Assembly: GCA_028023455.1 (NCBI GenBank)
Contig: JAQFVV010000007.1
Coordinates: forward strand, 806,001-870,000
Source of the DNA: Epiperipatus broadwayi
Lineage: Eukaryota > Animalia > Onychophora
Direction of reading: 5' to 3'
DNA: 64,000 nt
Shown here: in pieces, positions 746 to 62,600 of the stretch
How positions within the stretch are numbered: the first letter of the stretch is position 1
How the letters are laid out: the number at the start of each line of letters is the position of its first letter
Notes under the pieces: generated by a model
What the model was told of the DNA's origin: nothing
Databases searched by the model: none
The model's input: only the letters and a program-made list of their open reading frames with translations
Made by a program: the position numbers and the translations under genes

Positions 746-995
746 GTAATCTTTTACATTTGAAAGAACTTTTCACTATTTGAATCAATTATTCGGTATG
801 CACTATCCAATATCGAATTTATTTTAATTAAATTACCTAAAAAAATTTAAACTTTCATTGTACATTTTACTTTAAAAAAAATTATATTACAAAAAAAAAT
901 TAAGATCATGTTCTTCTTTTTTTACAACTGATGTACAATGCCAAATAGCAATTTGTACCATATATATGTAAATAAATTGTACAATATATGGATAT

Positions 996-1785
996 TGTAA
1001 CTACTAACATAGAAAGGTTAAACGTACATGTAGGAAAGCCCCAGCTGGTCAAATAGTTTCGTTATTGAACATATTCTCATGAAGAAGACATGCATTCGCA
1101 CATATGGCAAAACAGTACAAAGGTTGAGGTAGTTTTGGTGATATGGGAGCTGGCATACGATCTCTTCCATAGAGCATCCAAAACCTTAGCCTCATGTTCC
1201 ACAAGAAATATAATCCCTGATTATGGGGGGAAAAACTTCAGATTTTTGAAGATTCCCAAATGATCAAGCATTTGAAATACTGAAGAATTGTTAAGCTATG
1301 CCAGTAGTACAATATACATATGAGAATAAAAATAGTGGTTAATATAATAACTTTAACGATTTAATTCTCCATGCATAATGGTATGTATAATAATGAATCG
1401 GGTTATAAATATCAAATGAGACATTTAATTAATTATTTATTTGATTAGTCAGTTATGCTTGCCCATATATGCTTTAAACAAAATTAAAACTTCTAATTGT
1501 TTGGCCATTGGGTGATGACAGTAATTAACACTTCATTCTTTATTGCGATCTTTCATGAACAAAAATAAAAAAAATAAAAAAAATTAAACAAGAGAGTTTT
1601 AAAATGATCAACCCCACAAGTCTATTTTAAAATAATATATATTCAATCATACAGGAAGTGAATGATAAATAATTATCATTACAATTTACATTGCTTTTAT
1701 TTCTTTTTTTTAAAAAAAAACAAAAAAACAATTATATCTCAAAATCGTGAGGTTGACCTGAACTGGCATATTACTAAAGAAAACT

Positions 1786-1816
<31 letters not shown>

Positions 1817-2942
1817 AAGATTCAAAGTTTTCTCTATGCATTCTTATATATATATATATATATATATATATAAGAATGCACAGATGTATAAAGCCAGAAT
1901 AAAGTGAAATCAGAGTTAGTATTGTAAGAAAATATATTACGTATATAGAGAGGTCTTACAAATAAAGATTAAATATACATATAACAAAAACAGTTAGTAT
2001 TTAGAGGTAAGTACTGACAACTTTACATAGCTAGTGGATTGTTACTTTGGTATACTTGGAGTGAATGGTTAAATGGTTCATTCTCTCAACTTTAGTTGCA
2101 GGGATCAGCCTGGTGGTCAACAGTCTTGGTCACTATGGATCTTCCATTGGTGGCAGCATTCTTCGATGGAAAAAGTTTCATAGCATCATACTAGAGGCAG
2201 CCTTGAGAAGCACAGGGAATGACAATTCAGGCCCTACTCAACTGTCATTTTAAAACTAAGCACAAAAAAGTAAAAACAAAGTGTAAGACTCAGACTTAGA
2301 CTGTCTGACTCAGACTATAAACTGACTTATCTCTAATCTATTCTATTTTTATCACCCAAGCTATTACAGAAATGTTTTGGCTTATTTGCCCAGAGGCAAA
2401 TGAGACAATTATTAAATTCCTGAGCAAATTAGTTCATTTCAATTAAAAGTAAGATATAAGCAGATAAGGTTCAAATCTGTTATTAGCAAAACTTTTAATT
2501 AAATTCCTTAAATTATAAAAGTAAAACTATGATGAGACAATATTTTGATTAATTAAAAACCAAGCATTAAAATATTTAATTAGTGAAGAAAACTGCACAA
2601 TGGGTTGATTTGAACCTGCCATCTTGGTTATATCTCCTTTTATATTTTTACAAATGTGAAATTAAATGCAAATAATTTTTACCAATGACAAACTTTATGT
2701 GATAAAAAAAATCTCTTTTAAATAAAAAAACAAGCTTAAAATATTCAAAAGTATGAAAATATCAAAATAACAGAATCAAAAATTATAAAATATTCATTAT
2801 AATAATTTGTAATATATATAATTGCATATATATGATGGCACTGTTAGTATTTAAATATTGCTGGGTTTGAACCCTTGTACATATTAGTTTATTTTAAGTA
2901 GGAAAACATGAAGCTCACTCTAACTACAGAATAATTGCTTCA
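996..2942 (-). repeat. 3' LTR of gypsy element 1
   Basis: TGTAAC...TTGCTTCA on +; collinear with 9111-11000 with many substitutions and indels. Confidence 0.85.
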
Positions 2943-3133
2943 GACTTCCTCACTTGAAATGATGAAAAAAAAAGTTTATACTTCAGTTCTCTTGGTGGCT
3001 GGAAGAGCAACCAATAACAATGTAATGCTATTCTAAATAAAACTCTATACCTTATTTACTTTCACCTAATCTACCCTTTCATTTGTTGGACTTTATAATT
3101 ATATTCATTTATAATTTTTTTTAAAAAATTTAA

Positions 3134-6100
3134 TCAGGTGTCTGTAACAATTTGACCGACCGGTTTTAATTTTTCTGGGTCTGGAGATACATAAGGTTTA
3201 AGATGACTTGCATTGAAAGTTTCTTTTACCCCATCATCCATTTCTAACAGGAATGCATTGTCCCTATACTTTTGTTGAATCCAGTATGGTCCATGATACA
3301 ATGGGGAAAAGTTCTTGAATTCTGTTTTCGTCATGTTGCTAGGTTTTGGTGCTCTCAGCCAAACACTATACTCCACCTGAAATTGGTGTTGTTGGATATG
3401 TCCCCTTTTGATATGATACTGAGCTATCTGGGTCAATCATGTCTGTGCATCTCTCTGATCTTGGCTGGGGTCAATAGGTGGGTGGCCCTTTGGGTGAAGT
3501 GTCCTGAAAATTTTTGGAGTTGATTCTTCAAAATGGAGTCTTCTTGGAATAAAACCAGTGGACACATTAATGGCATGGTTAATGTAAGATATGATTTCAT
3601 CAGTTTTATGCACTTAACCATGATGATCCATAGGAGTATATGAAAGAGTCGATTGACCTCTCTCATAATTCTTTCATATGAGTTAGACTTGGGGGTTTCT
3701 GATGGACATTAAACGGTGTTTAAATTTTGTTTAGACATCCAAACTCTCCATTCCTTAGATGTAAATGCAGACCATCGTCAGTGAGACTTGGGTCAGGTTT
3801 TGCAACTTCCAAAAATTGCCTGCTTTGGAGGATATGGATGGTGTTTTTAGAATTGGCAGCCCTGACTGGGTATACCTGCACATACTTGGAGAACACATCA
3901 TATGTGACTAGAAAATAATGGAACCTCCAGAATGCAGGAAGGAGGCCATAATGGTCAATTGCAAGTAATTCATTTGGTTTGGATGCTGTGATGGGTTGAA
4001 GGGTACCTGTGTACGATATATTCGGAAATTTATTTTGTGCACATTTAGTGCATTTTCTTAATGTGAAGAGGATAAGACTATACATGCCTGGCCTATAAAA
4101 CTGCCTTTAGGGCCTCTTCAGTTTTCTTGCTCCAAAATGCCCCAATGCTTGGTGCACATGATTTATAAGCTGGATTCTTAGTTTATGGGAGTCATGATTT
4201 TCCATGGGTCATCTTTTTCCAGGATGTATGTTTGCAGAACACCATCCCTTAATCGATATTGCATGTGTTTCCTCTCAAAGGGTGTTTATAGTGTTAGAGC
4301 TACCATTATGTAATTTGTGAATAATTTGACAATACTGAGGTTCTGTCTGCTGCCAATATTGGGGGTTTTTCAGTTCAGATTCTATTGATGTGCCCTTGGA
4401 GATTATCGTGATTATGACTGTGTTCTCTAACAATTGGGGTTTTTGTGCTTGGATTGGTACAGGGTGATGGCTCAGGATATTGGCCACTACATTCTCTGGG
4501 CCAGGGCAAGACATTATACTGTACCTAAATTTTTGCAATGTTAAGCTCCACCTGATGACATGGTCATTTGTGAGGAACTCTTATTTAAGAACTCCAAGCA
4601 TTTGTGGTCAGTGATAATGACTACCTCAGAGCCCAGTAAGAATTTTCAGAATGTTTGGCAGGCCCAAACAATGGCAAGAATGTCTTGTTCAGTGGGAGTA
4701 TAATTCACCTCTGCTCCTTTCAAAATCTGACTGCTAAAATAGAGTACATAATGTTCTCCATGCACACTGGTCTGGAATAACACTGCACCCAGGCCTCTTC
4801 TGCTACTGTCTGTCTGTACATAGAATGGCCTTCTGAAGTTGGGGTGGTGTAGCATAATGGCATGCAACAAATTTTGCTTTATGGTACTGAGGTCTTGATC
4901 ATGAATCATTGTCCACTTCCATCTTTGATCCTTTTTTAGCAAGTTAACAAGGTTTGTAGTTTCACAGGCAAACTGTGGATAAAACTTGTGATAAAAATTA
5001 CATATTCCTAAAAAGGATCTGAGCTGTTATGGTTCTGAGGAGTTGAAAAATTCTCAATAGCATCCACCTTTTCAGGGTGGACTTTTACCCCATGCTTGTT
5101 TATTACATGACCTAAAAACATTATCTCTTGAATTGTGAATTTATTCTTTTCCAAGTTGATTGTGATATTTTCCCTCTGGAATTCTCTGAAGAACTGTTTC
5201 AAGTATTTCAAATGTTCCTCGATGTCCTTTGAGGCAATGACAATATCATCAATGTAGCATACCATGTGTTTCTGCATGTCATTGGATATTACTTGTTTCA
5301 GATATCACATCAACTCCACCCTGCTACTGATGAGTCCAAACAAGACCCTTTTGAATACATGGGTGTGACCATTGTATCTGGAAGCAGTATACTTCCAGTT
5401 CTGCGGGTCCAAAACCATATGCTAGTAGCTGGTGGTAAGGTCCAAGGTGGAAAACACAGTTTTTTTCCAGCTAGCTGAATTAATATTTTCTGTATGGGTG
5501 GGGGAGTGTCTCTCTCAGGAATTGATATACTATTAATATGGTGGGCATCAAGATGTAACTGAAGGTTCCAATTCTTTTTCTTGACCACAACAAGAGAGTT
5601 AATGTATGGGGATGACCTACACTCAATGATGTCCCAATCTATCATTTGTTTAATTTGCATTTTTACTTCTTCCTTATACTGGAAGGGAATTGGCTACATC
5701 TTGTTTTGAGCATAGGACTCCTCTTTGACCTATATCCAGTGAGTATATCCTCTGATCTTACTGGGAATGTTCAAAAATACATCAGAGTACTCCTCCAAGA
5801 TTTTCTTTATACGGAGTCTGTGACCAGATTCTTGAAGATCTGCCTCTTGTACCTTGATTGTGATTAAGGCTGGATCATCTGGCTGAATGAGGTAACTTTT
5901 TCTTCCCCCCACATGTTGATTATTGATTTCAAAATGGATACTTTCATTGTGTATCTAGCAGGTCCTTTTTGGAATAATCAATGATGCAGTAGTGTTGTTG
6001 CAGAAAGTCATATCCTAGTACTATATCATAGACTAGTCCTGACATTATCAGGAATGTGTGGCCTATGTTTTTCCAAAACCAATTTCTAACCACATCTGGT

Positions 6101-6330
6101 AATTCTCACTTACACTTTTTTCCACGTGCTAAGGTTAATGTAATAGGGCAAGTCAGGAGTTGCATGATGATGGTGTTGTCTTCCTTGAGAGTAATTACCC
6201 ATATCCTTGATATTATTGATACCTGACTTCTGAAATCTAATAAAGCCTTCACACTTTGGGATCCAACCCATACTCCTATTGTAGGTGATACATTCATCAT
6301 TTCTCGACTCTTCATGGTCATTCTTCTCAT
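3134..6330 (-). pseudogene. pol: Gypsy pol remnant (protease, RT, RNase H, integrase), many frameshifts and stops
   Basis: ORF track fragments: ALLDFRSQVSII (protease), SSPYINSLVVVKKK and YIDDIVIAS (RT), FYVQTDSSRRGLGAVL and YTPTEQDILAIVWA (RNase H), NELLAIDHYG...DVFSKYV (integrase core), YHGPYWI...FNASHLKPY (GPY/F C-terminus). Confidence 0.92.
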
Positions 6331-6555
6331 GAATAATCATATTCCTCAGGCTGATGCTGCCTGACATTAATTTTTCTCCTCTTTGTTTGTCATATTGATG
6401 ACCAAGCTCTGGATCTTTGTCTTCTCTTGCCTTTTGATTTCCTATAGTGTCAGTTTCTTTGACCTGTGCTGTGGTCCTTGGATTCAATATCCCATTGTCA
6501 AGGAATGTTAAAATTTTGATCATTTCTGTTATATTAGAAATTTGACTGCAGAGCA

Positions 6556-7025
6556 TCATTTTCTGCAACCAAGCAGGCATGTTTCATCTGATGATACAAA
6601 TGATTTGAGAATTGGAATAAGGAAATGCAGTGAGGATTTTAAACTTGGCCACCTGATGCAAAAAAACTGTGTGAGAATTTCTGGATGGTGAGCCTGGTAA
6701 TTCTCAGTCATCAATGTATGTAGGATACTCTCCTGACAGACTTCTCCCCAAAAATTATGCAATAGAATGGCCTTATATTCTTCACATGTGGTGGGCTGCT
6801 TTTGCAGTGAATGCCACCAATCCCTGGCCATGGCTTTTAAATAGTGGCTGGCAATAGCCACACACTCAGCTTCATTGGCTTGGCTAAAACAAAACAATAC
6901 TTGAAGATTCTCAAGATGTTCCTGTGGATCTGGATGAGGCTCACCACTGAAAATCTGCATATGTGCAAACCATGCCACTTGTGATGATCTCTAGTAATAA
7001 ATGTTGTTGAATTCTTAGTCACCAA
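6556..7025 (-). pseudogene. gag: Gypsy gag capsid remnant
   Basis: FSGEPHPDPQEHLENLQ...HYLKAMARDWW resembles the Ty3/Arc-type capsid motif. Confidence 0.8.
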
Positions 7026-7100
7026 GTTACTTTGGTCTTCTATGGCCTCTCAGGATTTAGATGATTTTCATTTTTCATGTTCTCATTCTGTTGATCCATT

Positions 7101-7496
<396 letters not shown>

Positions 7497-7995
7497 TCAA
7501 AATGTTGGTTAAAATAAAATGTGGATCACATTTTTTTTCTGATTTGGATTTAATAACCTTGCTTTTGATTATGAAACATTCTCTATAATAATGAAAATGA
7601 ACATCTCTCCCCCTCTCTTCAACTGCCTGCATCCCTACACAACCACAAACTCCATTTCTTTATTTAAACTATCCCCTTTATGCTGCACCTATCTATTACT
7701 CACTGCTGACCACAGCTTAATTTTATTCCACTACACTCAGTTTGCTCCTTAAATTCCCTGTTGGTTGCTCTGCCACACCTGAAACAGACTAGAACAAAAT
7801 ATGATTATTACTTGACAAACACATGTATGATACCCAGAAATACAGTCCATGAATATACTAAAATTGACTCTTTCTATATCCAAATTATCCAGGTTTGAAT
7901 ACAATTTCATTGAATGACATGACTTTTAACACTTCCTGTTGGCACATTCATAAGGGGCCAGCCAACAGTACAATAAACACATATATAATATTTAA

Positions 7996-8175
7996 TAATA
8001 TTTGCAAAATGATATTCTATAAATACCTCCAATATTCTTAACTTTAAATTTGTCATACATATACAGTACACTACATTTATGTATACATAATATTTGCAAA
8101 ATGGTATTCTATAAATACCTCCAATATTCTTAACTTTAAATTTGTCATACATGTACAGTACATTTATGTATACAT
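7996..8175. repeat. Tandem duplication of ~92 bp
   Basis: taatatttgcaaaatg(a/g)tattctataaatacctcc... at 7996 and 8088. Confidence 0.9.
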
Positions 8176-9110
8176 ATGTTAATATATATACGTGAACACA
8201 TAATATCAATAAATCTATATCTGAGAGAAAAAATATTTTCTTCCCTTTTTTTTTAGAAACACAAAATTGATTTATATATATATAACTCATACATATAATG
8301 ATTTATACATAATTTATACATATATATATATTAAATCTATACAAGTATAAATTTTCTCAGGGCCATTGTATTGATCAGAGCCCCACAAATGGCCATACAT
8401 AATCTGGAAAAGAAATCCACTGTATCGGACGTTACACAGTTTTACAGAGACATGAAACTCAAACTAGGGTTGTTGAGGAAGAATCCCTGAATAAGATATG
8501 TGAATTATAACAATACATAATTATATAAAATCTTTTTATATTTAAAAACTAACCAAAGTAAAGATTCGAACTCTGGATTGGATTTTTAATGTGTTTTAAT
8601 ATCAAACTAGCATGAATACAACATATATTTATATATAGTGATTTATCTATATATAGCAATTTCACTTTAGATAGGTTTACACTTATTACATTAACACTGA
8701 ATAATTCTTAATTGTTGTTAACAGGAGTTATACAATATGTTGTTTTAGGTCATGTGTGTGAATTCACCTTGCCAAAATAAACTCTCTTTTCACAAGAAAT
8801 GAAAGATCGATCAATGATTTAAATTAGTAGGAGCCAGACAGTCAACGTTATAAACCACATTTATTTATAGCAAATATAAAAAACATTTATTTTATTTTTA
8901 TATTTTACATATATTTTCTTTTGACTATTATTAGAGAACAAAAAATATATGCATATACAGGAATGGTTTATTAATTTTAAAAAGGTAGGCAGCTTTAAAG
9001 TAAGCACACTACAGGAATCTATACAATACTTCTTCTAACATGATTCACACATCCCATACTCTTATTTCTTAACAGGATAGAACAAGCAAAACAATTTAAT
9101 GAATGGATAT

Positions 9111-11000
9111 TGTAACTATTAGCATATAAAGGTTAAACATATATGTAGGAAAGCCCCAGCTGGTCAAATAGTTTCATCATTGAACGTATTCTCATGAGGA
9201 AGACATACGTTCACACATACGATGAAATGGTACAAAGGTTGAGGTAAGTTTAGTGATATGGGAGCTGGCATACAATCTCTTCCATAGAGCATCCAAAACC
9301 TTAGCCTCACATTCCACAAGGAGTATAATCCCTGATTATGAACGATTTCAAAAGAGAGGAAAAACTTCGGATTCTTGAAGATTCCCGAATGACCAAGCAT
9401 TTGAAATACTGAAGAAATGTTAAGCTATGCCAGTAGTACAATATACATATGAGAATAAAAATAGTGTTTAATAAAATAACTTTAATGATTTAATTCCCCA
9501 TGCATAATGGTATGTATAATAGTGAATCAGGTTATAAATATCAAATGAGACATTTAATTAATTATTTATTTGATTAGTCAGTTATGCTTTCCCATTTACC
9601 CTTCAAACAAAAGTGAAATTTCTAATTTTTTGACCATTTGGCAATGACAGTAATTAACACTTCATTCTGGGATTTTTCATGAACAAAAATAAAAAAATAA
9701 TAATAATAATTTAAGAAGAGAGTTTTAGAATGATCAATCCCATGAGTCTATTTTAAAATAATATATATTCAATCATACAGGGAGTGAATGATAAATAAAT
9801 CCTTATCATTACAATTTACTTTGCTTTTGTTTCTTTTTTTTTAAAAAAAAAAAACAATTATATCTCAAAATCATGAAGTTGAGCTGAACTGGCATATTAC
9901 TAAAGAAAACATTGAAAAAAGATATGAAACAGAATACACAGACTTATAAAGCCAGAATAAAGTGAAATCGGAGTTAATATTATAAGAAAATATATTACAT
10001 ATATACAGAGGTCTTACAAGTAATAATTAAATATAAATATAACAAAAACAGTTAGTATTTAGAGGCAAGCACCGACAACTTTACATAGCTGGTGGACTGT
10101 TACCTCAGTATATTTGGGGTAAATGGTTAAATGGTTCATTCTCTGAATTTCAGTTGTGGGGATCAGCCTGGTGGTCAACAGTCTTGGTTACTATGGATCT
10201 TCCATTGGTGGCAGCATTCTTCCATGGCAGGAGTTTTGTGACATTATACTAGAGGCAGCCTTAAGAGGCACAGGGAAAGACGTTTCAGGCCCTACTCAAC
10301 TGTCATTTTAAAACTACACAAAAAAGTAAAAGCAAAGTGTAAGACTCAGACTTAGACTGTCTGACTCAGACTAAAAACTGACTTATCTCTAATCTATTCT
10401 ATTTTTATCACCCAAGCTATTACAGGAATGTTTTGGCTCATTTGCCCAGAGGCAAATGAGACAATTATTAAATTCCTGAACAAATTAGTTCATTTTAATT
10501 AAAAGTAAGATATAACCAGATAAGGTTCAAATATCTCATTGCAAAACTTTTAATTAAAGTCCTTAAATTATAAAAGTAAAACTATGATGAGATGATATTT
10601 TGATTAATTATAAACAAGCATTAAAATATTTAATTAGTGGAAAAAACTTCACAATGGGCTAATTTTAACCTGCCATCTTGGTTATATCTCCTTTCTTTTA
10701 TATTTTTACAAATGTGAAATTAAATGCAAATAATTTTTACCAATGACAAACTTTGTGTGATAAAAAAAAACTTTTTTAAATAAAAAAACAAGCTTAAAAT
10801 ATTCAAAAGTATGAAAATATCCAAATAACAGCATCAAAAATTATAAAATATTCATTATAATAGTTTGTAATATATATAATTGCATATATATGATGGCATT
10901 GTTAGTATTTAAATATTGTTGGGTTTGAACCCTTGTACATATTAGTATATTTTAGGTAGGAAAACATGAAGCTCCCTCTGACTACAGAGTGATTGCTTCA
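9111..11000 (-). repeat. 5' LTR of gypsy element 1
   Basis: Paralog of 996-2942 with the same termini. Confidence 0.85.
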
Positions 11001-11008
11001 ATATATTA

Positions 11009-17500: not shown

Positions 17501-18573
17501 TTTCATATTACTAGAATAATGTAACATGATGATGAATAATTATATGATTCTTTTACAAAGGACTTTAATGTTTTAGATATTTAAAGTAAGAATAAATTAT
17601 TATTTTGTATTTTGTTCAAGAATATTGGATGGAAAAGTAAAGTAATCTTTTTCTTGTTGATTGGTTGAGATCATTATAATTACAACTGAACTTTGTTTGT
17701 TGTTTTGACTATGTTAGTTAGTCTTATTTGTCAATGTAGATTTGATAAATCTATAGGAAAATTTTATAAGATAGTGACTTGGTAGTAATTTTAAAAAACT
17801 TGAAACCAATGAGATGTTATTAATGAAGGATTTATTATGGGAACAGGAATAAAATTTTATAATCTTATTAAGTATAGAGGTACAGTTAACAAAGCCCTGT
17901 AGCTGGTATATTTTATCTGTGGGCAGTGTTTATTTTATATTGAATATTGATGTTTTAGAAAGCTGAAATAATAGCTTTGACATCGTTGTTGGTAGTGGAA
18001 GATATTAGACAAATAGGTCATCCTCTATTTTATTGATGCACTGTGCCATTATGTTTTATCTAATATGTACTATTGAGTAAGACTCTAGTTTTTTTCCTGT
18101 GCCTACATATCTATTTGCTATCTCGATTTTCCAAAGTAATTATATCGCACAGTATCGTATTTTAAAAGGAAATGATAAATAATTTAGAATTTAAGGACTG
18201 TTATTGGATGAATAAGATAGGTTTATTTACTTATAAGGAAGAATAGAGTTAATGCAAAATGGAATTAAGAATCAAACAAAACTAAATGATAAAGAATCAT
18301 AGAATATGTTCTATATTTATTTTGGAAATAAAATAAATTTCATGAATAAATAAATGAAGTGAAGTTGCTCTGAAATTTTAAATAACTTCAAATATTTTTA
18401 TTTTATTTTATAAGTATTGCATATTTTTCAAGATGGATAATGTAGTAAAACAAAACAGTACAAAATAAGCATAGTTACAATTTTGTAGTTATTTTAATAA
18501 TTAAGAAGTACATCAGTGATTGCAACTATTCCATATTAAAATAATATTAAGTAGGAGATATTGGGTATAATAA

Positions 18574-18870
<297 letters not shown>

Positions 18871-24454: not shown

Positions 24455-25256
24455 ATTATCTGTTTACGCTTAAATTTAATATATTTATAATAATGATAAT
24501 GAGTCTATAGTCGGTTGGAAGGTATATATGTATGTTTAAGGAAATAGGAATAAGAGTTATCAGTTAAGAACATATCAAGGAGAACACAACACAGACAGTC
24601 AGTGTTATATAATTGTAACTATTGAAAGTGATAGATGCTGAGAACGAAAAATAAAGTAGTGGGATTAAATGGGAAGGATTTATTTATAACATTTCTTTAT
24701 TCTACTTTAAATTAAATAATAATTTTATATTATAAGTATAAGTTATGAGTTCTCCACATCGATTACTAATTTATTTCTAGTCATGTATGTATTAGAAATG
24801 TATACAACTTTCTCATAGTTACTACTTAGAGATCATGTATTTATATAAGGTTGTGGAAGAAAGTTGTCTCATTATTATTCAGTTAGTAATGAGAATTTAT
24901 CATCAAAACATTTGCATAATTATTCCTAGGTTTGAAACCAAGACCACAATAAATTGAATTGATTTATCAACATTATATTTTTTTTGAGAAACAATTTAAT
25001 TATTTTCTCCATTGTCTTCTATAGTAATAAGCATGGATGAAGATGATCTCTGGTGGGCATTATGATTTCATAGTTGCAATTTGGTGCCTGGGTATACTTA
25101 GTCTTATTATTAATATCATTAGATAAACACACTAGTTGACCTTGTTTGATCCCAAGGTTCGATTCAATCGAATAGCTACTTGAACTAAAGTTGAGGTTAC
25201 TATATATATATATATATATATAGTAACCTCAATGTCTGTATTCCAATTATAATAAA

Positions 25257-28893: not shown

Positions 28894-29005
28894 GTATATA
28901 TTTGTTTAAAATATTGTTACTGTATTAATTATTGTATTGTTTTGAATAATTATATATATATATATATATATATTTATGTATATATAAACTATTATTATAC
29001 TATAA

Positions 29006-29045
<40 letters not shown>

Positions 29046-29780
29046 TAGTTTTAAAGTATAATAATAGTACAAAATAAATAGTAATAATATACAACTTAAA
29101 CAGAAGTACATTCAATTACATTGTAATTATTATCAACTGAATTTATTGAGAAAAAAGCAGATGTTATATGACTTTGCAGGAACTATGTTTTTTTTTTTCT
29201 GATGTCTTTCTTAATGTAATATTTTTGTGTGATCTGAATTGAACATAAATTTAAAGTTATAAGCTTTTTCATGGAAAACAAAATCTGAATAGGTATAAAA
29301 ACATTAAAAAATGCTACAAATAATTAGTCTAATATTGCTTCACCTTTTTTGACCATGAAAAACCTTATAACTTTAACTTTTTCTTCAATTGAGATCATAT
29401 AAGAATTTTACCATGAAGAAAGACACCAGAGAAACATAAATATTAAAGAAGCAATAGTAATTAATCAATTTAAAGATTTTATAATAAATAGGCAATCTTT
29501 TAATATTGGTCTATGCAATATCTGGAAAATCATGTGATATCTGTTTTTTAAAGGTTTTTTTTATTGTTTATTTTTCGAACATTATTGTTATTATTATTGA
29601 AAGTGTCTCATATGCAGATATGAAACTAATTGCTGTAGATAAAATGGGTGAGTGCAATAGCATGACATTGTCTTTTAATGATGATGATGTATATTTTGTA
29701 TATATTAAATTAATTTTTAAGTAACTATGAATAAGAGAGCATTCTCTATTAGATCATTGCAAAATAAAATATTATATAAA

Positions 29781-33065: not shown

Positions 33066-34182
33066 GCATAAAATTAATTAAATATAAAGTGAAATATAAC
33101 CAGTTTTGTTCAAATATATTGTAACAGGATGGGGAGATCACTCCCAAGTAAATTAAATTTAAAATTTATAAAAAAGATAATATTTAAGTAATATAATAGT
33201 AAGATGTTATTAAAAAAAATTTAAAGTAATGTTTAACATCAAAAAAATATATAAGCAATTTTATATATTAGAGAGAATTGAGAGATCAGCCAGCTACTCC
33301 TCAGAACAACTATAAGTATAATTATCCATCAACCAACATTATAATAAGTCAAAGTAATTATTAGTACTGAATAATACTCAAAATAGCATTTATCATCATG
33401 AATGATCAATAATGAAAATATAATAAATCAACAGTCAATCTGGTGACTGGATTGGAAATAGGTCTTCTGCAGACCAGGCTAACTATTGAGCCTTTGCCAG
33501 CTTGGGACAATTATTTAACCATTAATTTGAAAGCACAAACTAAGTGCTTATCCATCAGAGTATATAATAATAAAAAAATCAGAAAAATAATGCTGGGACA
33601 TTAAAACATGCTGATCATCATCAATGCTCTATCCACTTAGTACCATGAATGTAATGGCCAGCTATAAACTTTATAAATATAAATTTAAACACTTTTTTTT
33701 CTTCTTTAATAAATGATTTTAAACTAATATATATATATTTGAAACCAGGCACTCTTCACAAACCTGGGTGCTTATTCTCGGGTGACAATTAACACCTTCA
33801 TTAAAAACAGAGTTCCACCTTTTAAAAACAAGCTTGAAATTTATATCTAAGTGTGATATACATGTTTTCACTTAGGAGATTTCTAATAGAAAGAAATTTT
33901 GTTCAATTAACTAAAAATTTTCAAAAATACCGTGCTTGTTTTTAAATTTCAAAATCAGAATAACAAATAATATTTATTAGATCTTTTTAAAATATCTATT
34001 TCATAATAAAATTCTGTTTTAATTCAGAGTTATTGAATCCTTTGTTCATTATTTTTATTCCAAGTGAAATGTAAAAAATATCAACTAAAATTAATGTCTG
34101 TGTTTATTTCTACTTTTCCTTTCAGATTTATATACATTTGTGCATACACACTCTATTATTATGTGCCATATAACAGATTTGT

Positions 34183-34228
<46 letters not shown>

Positions 34229-34247
34229 CAAATATATATATGTATAT

Positions 34248-38287: not shown

Positions 38288-40020
38288 TGTACCAGGTTTG
38301 AACCATAGATAATCTCACTTACTCTGCAAGCTGGGTTTAACTGGGTTTAAACCTATTTATAATAAATTTATAATCTTACATTATAAATATTACATGAATG
38401 AACTGGTCCATTCGAGAAGAGTGGAGAATACTATTGATGGTAGAGCCATCCACAATACCCACAGTCAGACCAAGCTATGCCATGCATAACACGATCACAT
38501 TTCCAGACTGTGGCCCATCTTAACTTCTAGATTCAAACCCCTACCATCCATACCCTGTATTTATTTCAGAGTGACCCTCAGTGCCATCAAGTGTCATAAC
38601 TAACAGGTTTGGACAGTAAGGCCATAAACCAGGCCTCACAAAATCCCTTAACTAGCTCAGCTACTTGTAATCAATAACAAATTATTTCAATTAGTGGCAA
38701 AAGAATTGACCGACAAATTAAGTTTTAGATTTAAAGACAATTTATTTTAATTAACATTTATTATACTAATTTTAAATACTTTTGTAAATCCTAACTAACA
38801 TAACACTGGTATTTTATATAATGATCATGCACATTCTTAATTAAGACACTAGATTATCATATAACAAAGCATTAACTAATATTTGACATTTAAAACACAC
38901 ACATCAATAATTAATCTATGTATGCTATAGAGTTCATATTACTTGACCCTCGGAGGCTTTATGAATGTGATAGCTACTTTAGAAATGAGAATAAGAAAAA
39001 TGTTATTACCTAGGATTTTAGAACATGGATACTTCTTGCTATTTGCTGCTTCTAATGAAATATTTCTGACCGGTAAGATTTGAAGTTTTCCTGTGGAGAT
39101 TTATTATTATTCATTGGTGCTATTCTTGGAGACAGTTAAATAATGATGGTGATTCTTCAAGTTGTTATGCAGGCATTTTTCTATTCTGGGTAGATTGCTG
39201 TTTCACAGACTTCAGGCTGGAGCAAGTCGTATGTTTCTGAGAAGTTAACATGGCATTATTGACTGATTTAATCTCAATTGCTCAATCTCAACTGCACAAT
39301 CTAAACTGTTTTCTAAACTAAACTAATTGTCTGATGAAAAACTGGACTATTTATACTTAAGGTCTATTGTCATTTAGATGTCCACCAGCAATATGTTATT
39401 GAAATTCCTTCCTTGTTTTAATTGCATTCCTTGAGATAAGCTTTTAATCATGTTGTTGGTGATGTTAATTAGAAGCCATCACAATGTAGTGTTGTTGTTT
39501 TTTGTTTAATTTAATAGCCATTGCTGAGTGTTTTTAATTTTTTAACTTTCATTTATTTCATTTTTTTTAATATTTACTACGCATACCTTTATTATATTTA
39601 CAATTGCATGTATATATTTTACTAACAAACTCATATTAATTCATCATTTACGCACATATATAATTTAAAATCAATCCACTATTTAGTTTCTAAGATGACT
39701 TTTTTTACTTAAATAAAAGGAGATTTATATTTTTAAACTTTAAGTTATATTTCAACTAGTATTAATAAAGAAAACTCTTTAACTTCTTTTATAAAACTTT
39801 TAACTTGACACTTCTAAAGCAAACCCCCCTTCCCCTCTCTAATTAATTAATTGTAACTTTTATTTCAACTACTAATAATAAAAAACTGTTTGACTTTTAA
39901 TTTTACATTTTTTGAAAACAAACTGCAATAAAAATTTCTTAAACTTTTACATACTATTCTCTTTTAACGAAAAATGTTTATTTTAATAATTTTTAGACAA
40001 AATTATTATGTGCCAACACA
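38288..40020 (-). repeat. 5' LTR of element 3 (outer terminus lost)
   Basis: Paralog of 34248-35997; the last ~17 nt are replaced by a fold-back. Confidence 0.88.
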
Positions 40021-40038
40021 TTGTTGGCACAATATATG

Positions 40039-40070
<32 letters not shown>

Positions 40071-40109
40071 TTGGTAGAAAGAATTATATATATATATATA
40101 TATATATAT

Positions 40110-40430
40110 AATTCTTTCTACCAAAATATCTTCATTCAAATTTAATCATGTGATTAATATCAATTATTATGTTTTGATTTGTATTAATAATGCAAAAAGT
40201 ATTTGAAGGTCTTCTAATTCATTATTGTCAATCCTTATTTTATTCTTATGTGAAAAACCATTAAATATTAATTTATTTTTTAACATTTATCTTTAGCCCT
40301 ACATTTTTTCTTTCATCTGATAATTCTGAAAACATTTTGTGAAGCTTTGAAATGTTATTTATAAAGACAACCAACTCATTTGTAAACTCTAGATGATTTA
40401 ACTAACCTCTATTAATTTTTTTACTTTCTG
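40110..40430 (-). pseudogene. RTE-clade LINE RT remnant
   Basis: LNHLEFTNELVVF...KMFSELSDERKNVGLKINVKK resembles LNHLRFADDIVL...VGLKIN.KKTK; downstream IKIDNNELE and INHMIKFE*RYFG also fit. Confidence 0.6.
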
Positions 40431-48692: not shown

Positions 48693-51140
48693 ATGGACTA
48701 TGTAATAAAGCCTATACTAAGGCCTAAATGCTCTAATGGGAGGAAAAATATATATACTAACCTTAAAACCTCTGATGAGTCCCAAAGTTTGGATTACAAC
48801 AATAAACCCTCCAAAAAACCTAAGAATAAATCTACAACAGTAGAAAGCATTTCAAATAATCAATTTCTTTCTTCTTTGACTACTAACAATCTGATAATAA
48901 AATCTATGCTACAATCGAAACACTGTCATGTGAAAGGGGAAAATAATTCGAAATTATCTAGTGATTTCCAAATTGTAAATGCAAAGATTGCAACCCCTAA
49001 TGACCCTAAAAATAGAGGTGAAAATGTTCGAAATGATCATACCGTTAAAAAAAGTATAATTCCTTTCATAAACTCGCGAAACAAAGGGAAAACTTTGCAA
49101 CAGGGGAAAAATGATGATTCCCCAATTACAGCCTCAAACAAAAAAATGAATCACTTAGAGAATACCAAAACTTTACAAACACCATCAAAAACTAATCTAT
49201 CTCCACTAAATAATCCAGAATGGGGAAAACAGATAAACAACAATAATTTATATAATAACACAAATCTAAATCTCATAAAATCTCCAAAACATTTAAAGGA
49301 AAATAAAAATTCCAAAACTACAATAATTAAACCAAATCAGAAATTGACCATAAACCATAATGATATGCACTCTCCCATTCCAAAACAATCTTCACTAAGT
49401 CACCCAGAGTTTGACAAATTCAATATCACAAGCCCTGAATACAGGGATTCAAACCAACTACCTCACAACTCTGAGCATAATAAAACCACAAGCCCAATGA
49501 TGAATGAAATGACATTTGCAAACAAGGTCAGAGCTAACATAATGATAAATACACATCATCAAACATCACAACCTGATAAATACATGGAAGCAATTCGACT
49601 TTTATAAGAAATAGAAACAGAACAGTCTACATCAAACTACTCTAATCTTCAAACAACATCTACAGATAATCCTACTTGTGATATTCAGAACCATAAAATA
49701 ATAAATGAACAGTTTAACCAAACCATCCCATTGCCACTCTACAAATCTCTACTCACTAATATAATGAGTGTTCTCTCATACTTTCCAGTACAGATAACTG
49801 TTTAAATCTATACACATTCCCTACATCATCACTATATGAACTATGTAAAGCACATGGCTGGTGGAAATCGATCCATAAGATCCTCTTTTATCCAAATGAA
49901 AGATATCTTATCATCCAGTTCACAAACATACAAGTTAAAGCTGCCTTTAGAAATAGTCATAAACTCCTAAACAACAAATTTCTTGTCTACATTGACCTCA
50001 ACCGCCCAGTTGTTGTAACAGGGCGAATTCAAAAATGTACCATGGACTTTGAAAAGGCAGACTATCAGTGCCACTTCAAAGACTATGGCACCATTACCAA
50101 ATTTCAATACCTAGTAGCAGACAATGATGATTCCACAGTATACATCAACACTGCACAATTTCAGCTAGTTCTTAAAAAAGGAATTCCATCTCAATCAGTC
50201 CCATCTCTAATTCAACATGGTGAATCTCCACTCAACATCATCTTTCGTGGCCTTCCACCCCAATGCTTCCATTGCAGGCAGAGAGGCCATCTAAAAAAAG
50301 ATTGTCAAGAGAGAAAAGGCATAATTTGTGGAGAGATTCGGTACAAATTCCACAAATGTGATAGCGATCAAGAAAATCAACATCTAACAAATACAAACCC
50401 AAGTCTCAAGCAACAATATATCACTAGCAATACCATAGATCACACTACATCATCATCAAAAATTCCTAATGATAAAACTTCCTTGGAAACAACAATTTCA
50501 ACTCACTCCTGAACAGCTGCATACCAATGACAATTGCGTATCATCATCAGATACAGCAACAATCAGCCAAACAGACATGGACACCGATGCTGAACAAAGT
50601 GACACTACAATGGCCAGCAACAGAATTCCACATAAAAGAAAACATAAAAAAAAACAATAGCTCTGAACAATCACAAGAAAGTAGCAATAGCAATGAATGT
50701 GACAATCTTCGAGATGCAACAAAGACTAATATTCCCCCACCAAATAGACCTTGTAAAAAAAATGAAGAGACCGTTCTTCAAAAGTCACAAGTTCATATAA
50801 CCTCACAAATGAAACAAAAACAATAGACCAAGATAACAACATACAACTGATTGACCCTTTGTCTCAAAATAAAGTGGCCTCATGTCAACATGAAAATGAT
50901 AATGAACGCTTACTGATAGACTTATCTCCATCATTGTGGCCTATTCCTGAACCTATTCCACCAGACCTCAACTTATCTAAGAACCTAATACAATCTGAAC
51001 CTTATCATCACCCCACGAATTTGATGCTGGAACAGAATATTATGGTCTTAGAAACTGGATCACATTCCAATCAGGCAAACTCTCCCACACGAGAAAGCGG
51101 TTTCACTATCAATGATGACTTTCAACATAACATCGATTAA
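48693..51140 (+). pseudogene. L1/Tx1-type LINE ORF1 (Asn/Lys-rich N-terminus, RRM-like region, CCHC knuckle), disrupted
   Basis: IIFRGLPPQCFHCRQRGHLKKDC knuckle typical of Tx1/L1 ORF1; spread over several frames (48693-49607, 50042-50512, 50527-50826, 50859-51140). Confidence 0.75.
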
Positions 51141-54100
51141 CGTCAGAGGCATGAACTCCCTTGGCAGAATCCAAGCATTATCATTCTGGCTTAAGCATAA
51201 TACACCTGATGTTCTTTGCCTCAATGAAACAAAACTTCACACACTATCTGACCAAAACATCATACAGAGAATACAAAAATTTGGATACTTCCATTATTCC
51301 TTCTCCTCCTCTGCATCTGGTGGAGTAGCAATTCTTTTTAATAAAAAATCTGAAATAACCTTTTTCAAAATAATTCATATAGACTCTGTCTGCCTCATAG
51401 CCATTATACAGGTAAATGGATGGACACTTAACATAATAAATGTTTACATGACCAAAGCATCAGATATAATCTATAGAATCATCCACACTATCAACGCAGT
51501 TTTAAGAACTAACCCTTTTCCTGCATTGATGTTGGGTGACTTTAATCATACATATGATTCTTTTGAAAGGAGTCACTTAAGATCACTGAGCAACACCTTT
51601 ACAAGTGGAAGACAGCTTTTTGATGTGTCTGCCTTCTCATTCTATTCATCACAGTTTAAGTCCCTCATTGATCTTTTATACTTCTCTCCTTCACTTGCTC
51701 CCTTCATTGAAGCTAACCTGTGGCCTGTTGTCTTTACGGACCACATGGCACTAGAGGTCCTTATCAGAATTGTGGATAACACACATTCATATGGCAACAT
51801 TCCACGAACAATGAGGATCCTCACAAAGGAATCTGCCACTATACAACTCATCTCTGAGATTTACATATCATTCAACTCTGCTAATATAAACACACTTTCA
51901 CCATGTGATAAATGGAATAACTTCATAAATATTCTACAATCACATATTCATAAATGCACTCAACATAATAAACGTCCCCTCAAATTACTAAGTCAATTGG
52001 ACAAGATAGCCGACACACTTAAACATTTGCCCATACAAAGGCAAAATATCCAAGAAATTACTCGCCTTAAACTACAATACAAAGCTACCCAACAATCCCT
52101 GGCTGAATACCTATCAATTAAACGAGTGCGCAGTTACTTAGCATATCAACACTGCTGGACTCGAGGTTACATCAGATGGGCCCTAGGATCCAACCAACAA
52201 AACAAGGCACCCTCATCGATCAAGATACACAGTAAACAATATATCGGCCTCTCCATGCTTTCCAAAATAAGAGACTTTTACAAAAGAAAATTACAACCTA
52301 TTGGTGTCACTAACATCCGTAGAGTTTTTGTTACTAACAACCCTATGAAACATAACATCACAGATGGTGATGTTCTTGACAAACTGCAATCACTCCCAGA
52401 AAGTGTCCATCCTGGCATGCATGAAATTCCCAGATTTCTACTTTTACACCTAAGAGCTTTTACTATCCCAGTAATCCACGGAATGATAGACCTCATCGCC
52501 ACTGGACATCATCACCTAATAAACCTATGTCCCATCTCCATGGTACCCTTTTTAAAGAAGTGAGATGCACAACCAGATCTCAATAAACTGCATCCTATCT
52601 CGATGATTCTTCTATTGACAAAGATCATCGAGAGCATCATTAAAGACAAGATTCAATATAACATAATTAAACAACTTTCACGCTATCAATTTGCAAAAAA
52701 AGGCTCTTCAACATCTGACGCTGTCAGCTGCTTCAGATTTCTGGTCAATCATGTGCGGAGACAAAGGAAGCTTCGGCCCATTGCAGTCCAACTTGATATA
52801 GCTGGGGCATTCGACTCTGTGAGAATTGATGTTCTTCTCAGTGTTCTGGAACAGCTAAATGTACCACCCATATACATTCAAATGATTGAGAACCTTCTTT
52901 ACAATCGGGAAGTTTTCTTGTCCCTAGATGGTCGCATTGCCCCAGGTTTTATGCCCTACATCTCCATCCCCCAAGATTCTCCCCTGAGTGCACTTCTCTT
53001 TGCTGCCTATATCAATCCAATGCTGTTGAACATCGAGGCCACGTTTTCTGGTATCGCTGTTCCGCTACTTAATGAGAACATCAATCACATCTCCTATATG
53101 GATGATGTAGTTGTGTTTCTTTCATCCCATGATGAACTGGGTAAGCTAAAACAACTTCTTGATCACCATGCCAAATTATCTGGTTTCCTTGTCAACCCAA
53201 AAAAATTAGCTATTTGGTCAATTCTTACTGGCCACAAGATCTCTGGTGGATTTGAAGCAGCACCACAGAAATTTCTAGGATTTCACCTATCAAAAACACC
53301 CACGGTGATGCATAAAGAGATACAGGACTCATTATTAGAGAAAATTGAAACCACAATCGCATCTTTGTCAAAAATATACCTTTCCCTATTTGGGAAAGTA
53401 GCCCTTTTAAATGCTCTCATTCTTCCAAAAATAATATACTATTTGGCAGGGTTCATCCCCACCAAGGTATTCATCAACAAAGTAGAAACCACCTGTAGAA
53501 AACTGTGTTGGGTGGGCCAATCACCCGTAATTAGCTTGAGAATCCTCCAAAAGCCCAAAACTTTAAATGGTCTCTCACTACACTCGCTAACTATATTCAA
53601 CTTACAATGCATCCATAATGTACTCTACAACATCTTCAAGGGAAATGAACGTGCTCAATGCCCACTTCCGGAAAAGGACATTCAACCTACTGATCGGCCA
53701 CCCCCCAGAGGATGTGTCTTGCTCCTTCAACAGCAGATCAACTTTATCTTTGATAACATCAAACCAACATCAACCCTGTTTCAAAGAAAACTTGCGTATT
53801 GGGAAGTGTTTGATCTTCTTGACCATCAAAAACAGAGGATCCCCAGCTGCCTTTCAATCAACATCCTTCGAATGATAAGGATGACCAAGCTCTGGAAGTT
53901 GCCGCCAAAAATCATGGACTTCCTATTGAAATCGAACCTGCATGCCCTCCCAACAAATGCCTTCCTCCACTATAAAAGGGGGCAAGATATTGACCCTAAT
54001 TGCACATTGTGTCAAAGACAGGAAGAGACTACCGATCACTTCCTCTTCGAATGCATAACTTTGAACAACTTAAGAACTCATTTTCAACAAAACATGACAA

Positions 54101-54345
54101 GAAATCAAATTGAAATGAACCTCAAGACAGCAATTGAAAAGGGCATATTCTCTGAGATCCAGCTTTCGGCCATAATTAACTTTTCCATCTGGGCATTGTG
54201 CTGTAAGCTGGTGTTCCAGGCTGAGACCTTGAATAATATATTCACAGCATTTTGACAAATACTAAACAAGGAAAGGGATAGAGATATGTGCACTGCTGAC
54301 CCCTTCACAGCTGCACAAACCTGGGACTCCATTGCAATTGGATAG
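51112..54345 (+). pseudogene. L1/Tx1-type LINE ORF2 (APE endonuclease, RT, zf-RVT) with two in-frame TGA stops
   Basis: APE: SINVRG, CLNETK, GGVAIL, MLGDFN, TDHMA. RT: QLDIAGAFDSV, PQDSPLS, YMDD, FLG. Zinc finger CTLCQRQEETTDHFLFEC. The same frame continues across TGA at 52561 and TGA at 54253. Confidence 0.93.
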
Positions 54346-59371: not shown

Positions 59372-59517
59372 TTTTATAGAAAAGTAATTGTGTGTGTTTA
59401 TATAACATACATATATAAGATATATGAATTAAAAAACCACAGAAAATTTTTAATAGTAAATGACATCTAGCATTTTACTATTAATATTAATGAGATAAAA
59501 GTTTAAATCAATTTACT

Positions 59518-59556
<39 letters not shown>

Positions 59557-59594
59557 TAAATTGATTTAAACTTTTATCTATTTATATATTCATA

Positions 59595-59630
<36 letters not shown>

Positions 59631-59637
<7 letters not shown>

Positions 59638-62600
59638 CATATGAATTAAAATAAAGCAAAATTTTAATACTAAATGAAATCTAACATGTTGTTATTTAGA
59701 TTGATTGATTGATTATAATTTAGTTAGTTTATGTATATAAATTGTTAAATTTAAAATCAATCATATACAAACAAAGAAAAATGATCAAATTAATTATTAT
59801 TTAATCTTTTAGATTTTTTTTCATTTTAAATTTCAACAACTATTTGATGCATCTTTAGAATCAAAACTAGAAGAAAGTGTAAGGGGATCAACAACTAGAA
59901 TCGTAGATATGGAATTAAAGTTCAGTGAACCAAGAGACACTGGTGGATATACTGACATAAGCAATGGGAGTAACATAGTTAATCCCACTGGATTCAATCA
60001 ATTTTTAAAATTGCAAATCTTCTATGGACACCCAGGAGAGAGTCCTATGGAGCACCAGGAAATTTAGAAAGGTACTTCATATTTAATAGAATAAATGATG
60101 AAGTCAAGATAGCAGTTGTTTGCAGGCACTTACAAGGAGAATCACAAGTATTGTGGGACTCCCTGTTACACAAGTCAATGATGTTTTCAGATTATCAGAA
60201 ATCTTTGTTGGCTAGTTATTGGAGCAAGGAACTTCAAGAAAATATACTGCATTAGACATCACAGAGGAGATGGAGACCAGGGGAGTCATTCACTGCCTTC
60301 TTTCATCATCAAATAACAAGGACACCACATGCTAATGTGCAATCCATTATCTGAAAGGCAAATCATTTGGATCATTAGACATAGTTTTTTGAATAATGTT
60401 GAACAAATGGTCATAGGTACAGAGAGGAAAACAGTCAAGCAAATTGCCGAATTGCACAATGCCTTGGATAGAACCAGGAATAACCAAAGGTTTGAGGGGC
60501 ATGAATTTAAACCTCCTTCAAAGGAACAACATATAACCAAGAGTGGATGGAATGCTTATCAATGTCATTGGGAGGAAAATAGGGAAATATTTCTGGAGAA
60601 AAATCAAGGAGTGCAAGGAGTCAGACGAGAATTGATACTGAATGGAAGTGTTCAAATAAATAGACAGAAGATAGGGGGTATTAGGGTCAGAATCAGTATC
60701 CAAGCACAAGTGGATACAGACCAATTAAGGGAAAGCAACCTCCAGCTAAAGTATAGCATCAAAAAAATGATCGGACAGATTCAATGATACGATGATTAAA
60801 ATGTCATGGAATTAAGATTAATGACCATGGACTTGTACTTAAAGAAAAGGAAAGGGAAACAGAACAAAAAAGAAGAGAGACAATAAATGAACATACAGTT
60901 TAAGGGACATACAAGAAAAGGGTATATCACAAATAGAGACCAATAATAAGTGAAAGAATGTAGTGAGTGAGATAATAGATGGAAGCAGGGGTATATTGGG
61001 TCAGTCATTTCGATATGGATCATATCAGTATATAATAAACCATCTTGGGGTGTGTATGAACATGTAGGTCAGTGTCTGCCATATACAAAATGTTAGGATG
61101 CAGAGAAGATATGGATAAAGAATCCCTTCCCGTAAGAAGACTCATTGGATAAGAAATTACAGTTAAATATATGTTAGATATATGTGGAGTCACAGAAATA
61201 TAAAGAATAGATGGGTAAAGAATCCCTTTTAGTTCTGAACTCAGTGAACTTGCTGGATTAGAAAATTCCAGTTATGAATACACCTCAGTGTGATCATTAA
61301 GAATTATCATCCAGAGGTCAATAAGAGTTAATGTGTTGTGTATGAACAGGTTTAATTGGGTAACAAAGATAACCTGTGGGCTCAAACCTGTAGTTATAGT
61401 CAAGTGGTAGAAGAGGGCTCACTCATCATTTTCAGTATAAGCTGAGATTAAATTGGTTTGGTAGATCTGAGGTGATCAAGTGAGTGGGAAAGTAATTGCC
61501 TGTTTGTCACTCTATGAAACTTCTCATCATCACTTAACCTATAATTAGGGATATGTTATTATGATATCCAAACAATAATAATAATGAAGTGAAAAATGGA
61601 ATGGCTTTCAAGATTCTTCAAAGGATGGGTTTTGTGTGATGTGATGATCGCACACACTGTGATCACACATATATAAATATTTAATGTATCAAATAATATT
61701 AAATATGAGTTTTTTTTGGAAATAAAATAATACTTAAAATATTTAAAATAAAAGTAGGAGTGAAAAAGAAATCTGTTTCAAACTTCATAATATGTTCAAA
61801 TCAAAATCATTTTAATTGATTTCAGGAATGTAACTAATTAGGAATTAATTGTACTGATTAAATGAAACATAGGGGAGGGAAGGCTAATGAGATTCATATC
61901 TTTGACTTTTAAAGGTCAACATTTTGAAAAATAAATAATAAAGGTGAAGAGAATATTAAAATCATATAAGTTAATTTTATAGAAAAAAAACTTAATGGAA
62001 GATAAAATAAAAAAGAGAGTCATATAATTTAAAAGCTGACATTTAGAAAGTTTTGTTGAAGTTTGTAAGAAATTTAGCTTTATAAAAAAATAAGAATTTT
62101 CTCTCAAAACTACACATTTGAGTGAGTGAAATGTGTATAATTATACAAAGGGGGAGAAAGATACGAGATGCAAATAAGAAAATTATTTTGTGAAAAAATA
62201 TTAAAAAAGAGAAAAACTATGAAGGCTTTGTAAAAAGTAGGAAATAAAGGTGTGAAAATGAACCTATTGACCTTCCAATGAACAATAGAAAGAAATTTCA
62301 AGCAAGGAGATCAAGATAAAAAGGTATTCTGGGAAGGAGGGAGATCTATGAAGAGAGAGTAAGGAAGCAGACATTTTTTGTATGCTTGATAGCTAAAATT
62401 ATATACTATTTTGGAGCTTGCTTAGTTTGGCAAATATGACTTAATTATATTCCAATGGTGAAACTTGGAGAATGAGTGGCAAGGAGGGACATAAATGGAT
62501 GCTAGCTTGATCCATACCTGCCTTGCTCATATGGTCAAATCTCTCCCCATGAAGTAACAACCGCTATAGCCCTTGCCCAACAGTTCACATTCCCTGTTGT

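Follow-up and report, generated by a model that had tools for sequence, protein, structure and literature searches.

An LTR copy near the start of the DNA stretch analysed here bears a scar in which a short piece of ancestral sequence has been exchanged for two TA microsatellites, each the centre of a palindrome made from its own flank, and this arrangement may well be the product of a two-ended break both ends of which snapped back on themselves before being joined. The stretch (henceforth the window) comprises 64,000 nucleotides of contig JAQFVV010000007.1 (positions 806,001 to 870,000, forward strand) from assembly GCA_028023455.1 of Epiperipatus broadwayi. Its plus strand reads L-(TA)13-AAG-L'-CTA-R'-(TA)14-R at positions 1778-1880, where L and R are the left and right flank arms and L' and R' their inverted copies. 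The individual segments are as follows.

1778-1791, plus strand: L, left flank arm, agaaaactttgaat, 14 nt, common to all copies of the LTR family
1791-1816, no strand: tract 1, (TA)13, read from the sequence
1817-1819, plus strand: extra AAG, which disturbs the symmetry of the left palindrome (sequence and fold)
1820-1833, plus strand: L', attcaaagttttct, exact reverse complement of L (14/14 match)
1834-1836, plus strand: CTA, junction between the two fold-back copies, read from the sequence, with a possible TCT microhomology
1837-1846, plus strand: R', tgcattctta, exact reverse complement of R (10/10 match)
1845-1872, no strand: tract 2, (TA)14, read from the sequence
1871-1880, plus strand: R, right flank arm, taagaatgca, 10 nt, common to all copies of the LTR family

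The double fold-back described for this place in the earlier note is borne out letter by letter, L' and R' being exact reverse complements of their own flanks over 14 and 10 nt, respectively. Each sits directly across its own TA tract from the flank that it copies, and the self-complementary (TA)n, in effect an inverted primer repeat, lies exactly at each fold-back axis. Folded as single-stranded DNA, positions 1768-1890 form two adjacent hairpins (-32.4 kcal/mol, z = -10.8), and 0/200 shuffled sequences fold as well. Outside the TA letters the two arms comprise 12 and 8 exact matches; when unrelated flanks were sampled from the window, exact inverted arms of at least 8 nt occurred at a frequency of 0.28%, those of at least 10 nt at 0.04% and those of at least 12 nt at 0.0075%, so that the joint chance of the two arms is about 2e-7. 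The exact arms, the fold score and these null frequencies together mean that the scar is really present in the assembly and lies far beyond chance, which can be excluded. For the AAG at 1817-1819, TAAAGA in the left flank and AAAGA at the sister site (see below) offer possible counterparts, either of which could be a chance match. The possible TCT microhomology around the CTA at 1834-1836 is weak; the junction at another locus, L027, is a TA microhomology.

The scarred LTR belongs to a retroelement whose parts in the window are listed here.

988-2942, minus strand: LTR copy A, which carries the scar; the 3' LTR in element orientation, ending ...ttca (CA) at 2942
2943-8420, minus strand: decayed internal region of Ty3/gypsy type, with broken ORFs that have domain matches
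8421-11000, minus strand: sister LTR copy B, full length, about 2.58 kb, TG..CA, with the ancestral-type site at 9904-9940

The sequence features of the stretch 988-11000 mark it as a decayed element of Ty3/gypsy type on the minus strand, and the term sister LTR used in the earlier note is a fair description. Two direct repeats with TG..CA ends enclose remnants of reverse transcriptase, RNase H and integrase (the broken ORFs match, in minus-strand order, RVT_1, RT_RNaseH_2, rve (weakly) and SH3_Tf2-1, the Tf2-type integrase SH3), and a PPT-like purine-rich tract, AAGTGAGGAAG, adjoins copy A on the minus strand. The one amendment concerns copy A, which is truncated, about 680 bp being missing at its outer (window-left) end. 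Most of the 30 other copies of the family begin at 8421 and finish at 11000-11006, in window coordinates, and elsewhere, too, the family occurs in pairs, 7.6-10 kb apart. Copies A and B are 88-92% identical and either is about equally distant from the other copies; the LTR family is, from such comparisons, an old one. The decayed element also houses a long pure (ATAG)~99 microsatellite at 7101-7496, and another long pure microsatellite, (ATA)~102, lies at 18567-18870.

Polarity is clear at this locus, where dozens of related copies give the ancestral state. The sister site, 9904-9940, consists of L, a 14-nt middle (aaaagatatgaaac) and R only, and copies such as L008, L009 and L022 read ...agaaaactttgaaaaaa atattaaac agaatgca... 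The polarity that the earlier note had drawn from the sister LTR persists when other members of the family are brought in: the TA palindromes are missing from the sister and from 30/30 other copies in the site alignment, and the paired structure is therefore, on the testimony of that alignment, the derived state. In a genome search, the alignment of other copies with copy A breaks off at 1790-1799 and resumes at 1864-1875, with about 14 bp between the two pieces, and relative to the ancestral site about 14 nt have been replaced by about 82 nt, that is, a deletion is combined with an insertion. A full-length alignment of 31 copies reveals the scar as the sole private insertion of its kind. What did not survive is the statement that the sister copy contains no TA seed, as a 4-nt ATAT is present there (gATATg) and in the other family copies.

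Related structures recur in the window and beyond it. Six of the 24 perfect TA tracts of at least six units in the window have exact inverted flank arms of at least 8 nt, with a maximum of 7 in the mirror control, and in the 187 kb examined such arms are found at 10-11 of 67 tracts of at least six units, as against the null of 0.28%. The further cases in the window are given below; all arms in the window are perfect.

59493-59645, no strand: second double fold-back, 27-nt L/L' and 10-nt R/R' around (TA)16 and (TA)19
40069-40126, no strand: single-arm fold-back, 18-nt R'-(TA)13-R beside an imperfect (TA)n that adjoins a TE; R consists of unique flank DNA
25191-25232, no strand: 10-nt arms enclosing (TA)11; L forms the terminus of an abundant TE, other copies of which stop at the TA tract
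28951-29075, no strand: two TA tracts, the spacer holding a 14-16-nt inverted copy of the right flank, offset (seen by eye)
34176-34236, no strand: short arms of 8-10 nt on either side of (TA)21, after which come an imperfect TA stretch and the start of a TE

Of the paired tracts on contig C1, the first five, taken without selection, comprise one double fold-back, two single-arm fold-backs and two direct tandem duplications of flank plus (TA)n; such duplications, seen at L035:1480-1580 and L043:1480-1560 on this contig, are the direct-repeat counterpart of the fold-back scars. A genome-wide scan for (TA)n with inverted arms, suggested in the earlier note as a check, was run for 5-mer pairs and turned out in its favour, with 64 sites against none in the control. 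Specifically, CTTGA-(TA)n-TCAAG with at least nine units, one arbitrary palindromic 5-mer pair, occurs at 64-67 sites and the reversed pattern GAACT-(AT)n-AGTTC, also palindromic, at 36-37, as against 0 sites for the mirror non-palindromic control CTTGA...AGTTC. Scaled by the expected 5-mer frequency, the 64 sites suggest 10^4 to 10^5 palindromes in the genome, a rough upper bound. For independent events, too, the genome-wide counts are an upper bound, because some TA palindromes are carried by TEs or have TE termini as arms. The R'-(TA)n-R hairpin at L036:1501-1645 (contig C1), with a 16/17 arm, recurs at 92-94% identity in several loci and adjoins an abundant repeat that is very young (96-98%); a TE carries and spreads this TA-centred palindrome. 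An abundant TE family with more than 3800 candidate copies (window 40011-40031 and L034 ~1585-1605) ends in a terminal hairpin with a 9-bp stem, gtgccaaca cat tgttggcac, which directly abuts (TA)n. Fold-backs with TE-terminus arms may instead represent a tiny inverted TE insertion.

Several loci are informative as to how the tracts and arms arise. The flanks of the double fold-back at 59493-59645 belong to a TE, of which copy L032 bears a single long (TA)n flanked by this L and R; by their coordinates, other copies have the same single-tract arrangement. Locus L044 reads (TA)25-R'(11 nt)-(TA)12-R, and in five other copies the corresponding flanks enclose a single (TA)~10. As the relatives of both loci already possess one (TA)n, the tract must have pre-existed and been duplicated by the event. 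In L027 (G000:C12562), positions 440-700 contain (TA)9-X(49 nt)-(TA)7-X'(51 nt)-(TA)19, after which a 22-nt flank plus (TA)n is directly duplicated; the inverted copy, 49-58 nt long, reaches exactly to the next upstream TA tract, as is expected if synthesis runs until TA microhomology for the other end arises. In L018 (G000:C12413), a 21-bp tandem duplication at columns 700-730 of the LTR alignment is joined by a 9-nt filler, TATATATAT, at a site where 28 other aligned copies have no TA, and TA filler can thus arise at a repair junction. Finally, L015 (G000:C6587) has a plain (TA)~66 at columns 3085-3201, where other LTR copies read gtgata-aaaaaaa and lack any tract.

A repair process with fitting properties is known. 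In snap-back SD-MMEJ, a source of Pol theta templated insertions (Yu & McVey 2010, PMC2943611; Khodaverdian et al. 2017, PMC5728401), a 3' tail folds onto an inverted primer repeat within its own strand and is extended a little way, after which it unwinds and anneals to the opposite end of the break. In the reporter study no snap-back primer was used more often than TA/AT, and loop-out or trans SD-MMEJ events give rise to direct repeats (PMC5728401). A further report describes TA repeats as hotspots of breakage and the MMEJ dependent on Pol theta as the pathway into which their repair is directed (PMC13645644). At the scar, the order of the inner arms is decisive: had the ancestral stretch been reverse-complemented as one piece, the result would read R' x' L' and not L' followed by R', so a single inversion or template switch is excluded, and the simplest route is one event at a two-ended break, each end of which folded back. 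Considering this order together with the reporter data and the routing of TA breaks to Pol theta MMEJ, we favour, by a modest lean rather than with assurance, a two-ended break healed by Pol theta-like snap-back SD-MMEJ with self-complementary TA as the primer; the break and the identity of the polymerase are what we infer here.

The course of events would have been the following. A double-strand break would have occurred inside LTR copy A, each 3' end terminating in TA repeats. TA being its own reverse complement, each tail could fold back on itself and prime a brief extension templated by its own flank, over 14 nt on the left and 10 nt on the right. Joining of the extended tails would then have exchanged about 14 nt for about 82 nt, the product being two TA microsatellites, each at the centre of a flank palindrome. 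Other known outcomes of SD-MMEJ are represented by the direct duplications in L035 and L043 and by the tandem duplication with TA filler in L018. The model of the earlier note, in which both broken ends snapped back, copied their own flanks and were joined, stands as far as the two fold-backs are concerned and matches published snap-back SD-MMEJ (PMC5728401), the part to be given up being the missing TA seed. Two details speak against an entirely clean snap-back, namely the AAG at 1817-1819 and a 1-nt phase slip at 59.5 kb, neither of which is predicted.

The sequence alone fits off-tip opening of hairpin-capped ends as well as it fits snap-back synthesis, and a cruciform must accordingly be weighed as a different origin. 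A cruciform extruded from a pre-existing (TA)n could have been cut at its base by a structure-selective nuclease, leaving two hairpin-capped ends; a nick in the 5' strand of the cap, off the tip and 10-30 nt into the flank, would let it unfold to flank-(TA)n-inverted flank, and the ends would be joined without snap-back synthesis. The available text of PMC12972899 describes AT/TA cruciforms cut by Mus81/Slx4-type nucleases into hairpin-capped ends that are processed by Sae2-Mre11, and a parental (TA)n is indeed found in two polarised cases (59.5 kb and L044). At the site of 1778-1880, though, no other copy offers more than ATAT, too short a stretch to extrude. The cruciform also predicts paired tracts equal to each other and to their parent, with which the lengths at 1778-1880 (13/14) and at 59.5 kb (~16-18/19) agree and those in L036 (10/15) and L044 (25/12) do not; as a discriminator between hairpin caps and snap-back, tract-length equality is mixed and based on few pairs. 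The 49-58-nt arm in L027 that ends at a TA tract and the filler in L018 fit polymerase extension better, and we regard the cruciform origin as unlikely. A still smaller chance is given to replication template switching, whereby synthesis stalled at a TA hairpin would have switched to the nascent or opposite strand and returned, in two events, each leaving one inverted flank. Short-range switches are known from many genomes to generate inverted copies and hairpins (PMC5453318, PMC8794818), and the single-arm cases (40069-40126, L044 and L040) would require one switch only. However, one four-point switch gives the contiguous R' x' L' rather than the L' then R' observed, so that two independent events at one 14-bp site would be needed, yet the paired form recurs (1778-1880, 59493-59645 and L036); moreover, the loss of about 14 nt suits end resection.

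The source of the break might be sought in Penelope-like elements (PLEs) that target (TA)n: a break made by their GIY-YIG nuclease, followed by abortive integration, could leave two 3' ends that self-prime, with the element reverse transcriptase or a host polymerase doing the synthesis. This would explain where the break came from and is compatible with snap-back. The PLEs Naiad and Neptune prefer (TA)n and give inverted head-to-head insertions (PMC8557442), and several of the fold-backs abut TE ends. Such adjacency is, however, expected anyway in a repeat-rich genome, no PLE sequence is found at the scar, and no other copy has a (TA)n target at the LTR site, which leaves the scar as a PLE by-product about as improbable as template switching. 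Least credible of all is an assembly or consensus artefact at a TA-rich stretch. The unitigs are short and come from one sample, probably that from which the assembly was made, depth is zero at 1707-1854, the interval 1694-1881 was left out as repeat, a genome search found no second haplotig of the locus, and the arms in the window are without exception perfect. Chimeric fold-back reads, on the other hand, yield long palindromes and not 10-27-nt arms between flanks that are unique on both sides, and the arms always match the local flank. In addition, several loci share a related structure at 92-94% identity, and one arm is mismatched (16/17), from which it follows that such structures are inherited DNA. 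Insertion of a MITE or foldback transposon was rejected, since the inner arms copy flanks present in every LTR copy, and a genome search found no other copies of the scar insert apart from TA-only matches. A simple inversion or single template switch was set aside on the arm order, as explained above.

Within the favoured snap-back reading, the TA at 1778-1880 may have been a prior tract grown from ATAT or may have been added during the repair, and we consider the two about equally likely. Addition is favoured by the loss of about 5 nt on each side of ATAT, by the TA directly abutting both arms and by the TA filler in L018 as a precedent. For a prior tract speak the other two polarised cases (59493-59645 and L044), both of which had one, and the (TA)~66 expansion in L015, which shows that tracts grow in this LTR family. 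The de novo birth of a microsatellite announced in the earlier note is thus only partly upheld: the filler and the abutting TA agree with it, but the ATAT at the site and the pre-existing tracts in two polarised cases count against it. Birth of a microsatellite by break repair at 1778-1880 is, as far as the letters go, possible; its duplication, apparently by break repair, is demonstrated twice by comparison with related copies, at 59493-59645 and in L044.

There is nothing new in snap-back templated insertions, TA fragility or template-switch hairpins as such, and the present scars share traits with each of them. As in SD-MMEJ, there is a deletion with insertion of reverse complements of break-adjacent sequence at a short inverted-repeat primer (mostly TA/AT), and direct-repeat products (loop-out or trans) occur alongside. 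Unlike in the SD-MMEJ reports, both ends snapped back in one product, the long (TA)13-19 primer ends up duplicated, the arms reach 27-58 nt and the scars are germline-fixed and very numerous compared with reporter junctions. The PATRRs of human chromosomes are near-perfect, cruciform-prone palindromes with an AT-rich centre and non-AT arms, hundreds of bp long and few in number. The scars described here likewise have an AT-rich centre with non-AT arms, but they are 40-150 bp long, apparently number tens of thousands and have an origin from local flanks that is directly visible. Inverted flank copies on both sides of a break, made via hairpin ends, are also produced in V(D)J recombination (P-nucleotides) and hAT excision; P additions are a few nt long and lack a repeat tract at their axis. 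Unlike in hAT excision, no transposon excision is evident at the scar. With template-switch mutations (four-point model, PMC5453318) the scars share inverted copies of nearby sequence and new hairpins; those mutations involve no TA tract, however, and a single switch cannot yield L' then R'. The likeness to the fragility of TA/AT repeats lies in breaks at (TA)n, hairpin-forming ends that are hard to repair and routing to MMEJ, as presented in the available text of two reports (PMC12972899; PMC13645644). The same text lists deletions, small duplications and rearrangements and describes no flank-(TA)n-inverted-flank scar (PMC12972899; PMC13645644).

Among microsatellites none is more fragile than TA repeats, whose breaks have lately been linked, in cancer cells, to end joining by Pol theta. 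In the literature library searched, neither germline leftovers of TA-break repair nor single or paired flank-(TA)n-inverted-flank scars as a germline class are described; in this genome the scar is common enough to furnish a natural catalogue of repair outcomes. A broader reading, which we offer tentatively and hold to be rather doubtful, is that (TA)n tracts here often break in the germline and are healed by one- or two-sided snap-back, which would duplicate the tract together with inverted local flanks. Break repair rather than slippage would then multiply, and sometimes found, TA microsatellites and would seed small cruciform-prone palindromes (proto-PATRRs, precursors of hairpin RNAs or MITE-like elements), perhaps fuelled by the (TA)n-targeting endonucleases of Penelope-like elements. 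If true, this would explain paired TA tracts with palindromic flanks, provide a repair-based route to the multiplication of microsatellites and the birth of cruciform-prone palindromes, and yield a countable sequence signature for comparing end-joining activity across genomes.

As to the remainder of the window, a search of positions 1-64000 against Rfam returned no family at the gathering threshold. At 51112-54255 there is a LINE with two adjacent ORFs (483 and 550 aa), apparently little decayed, whose domains are endonuclease/exonuclease/phosphatase and RVT_1 plus zf-RVT.
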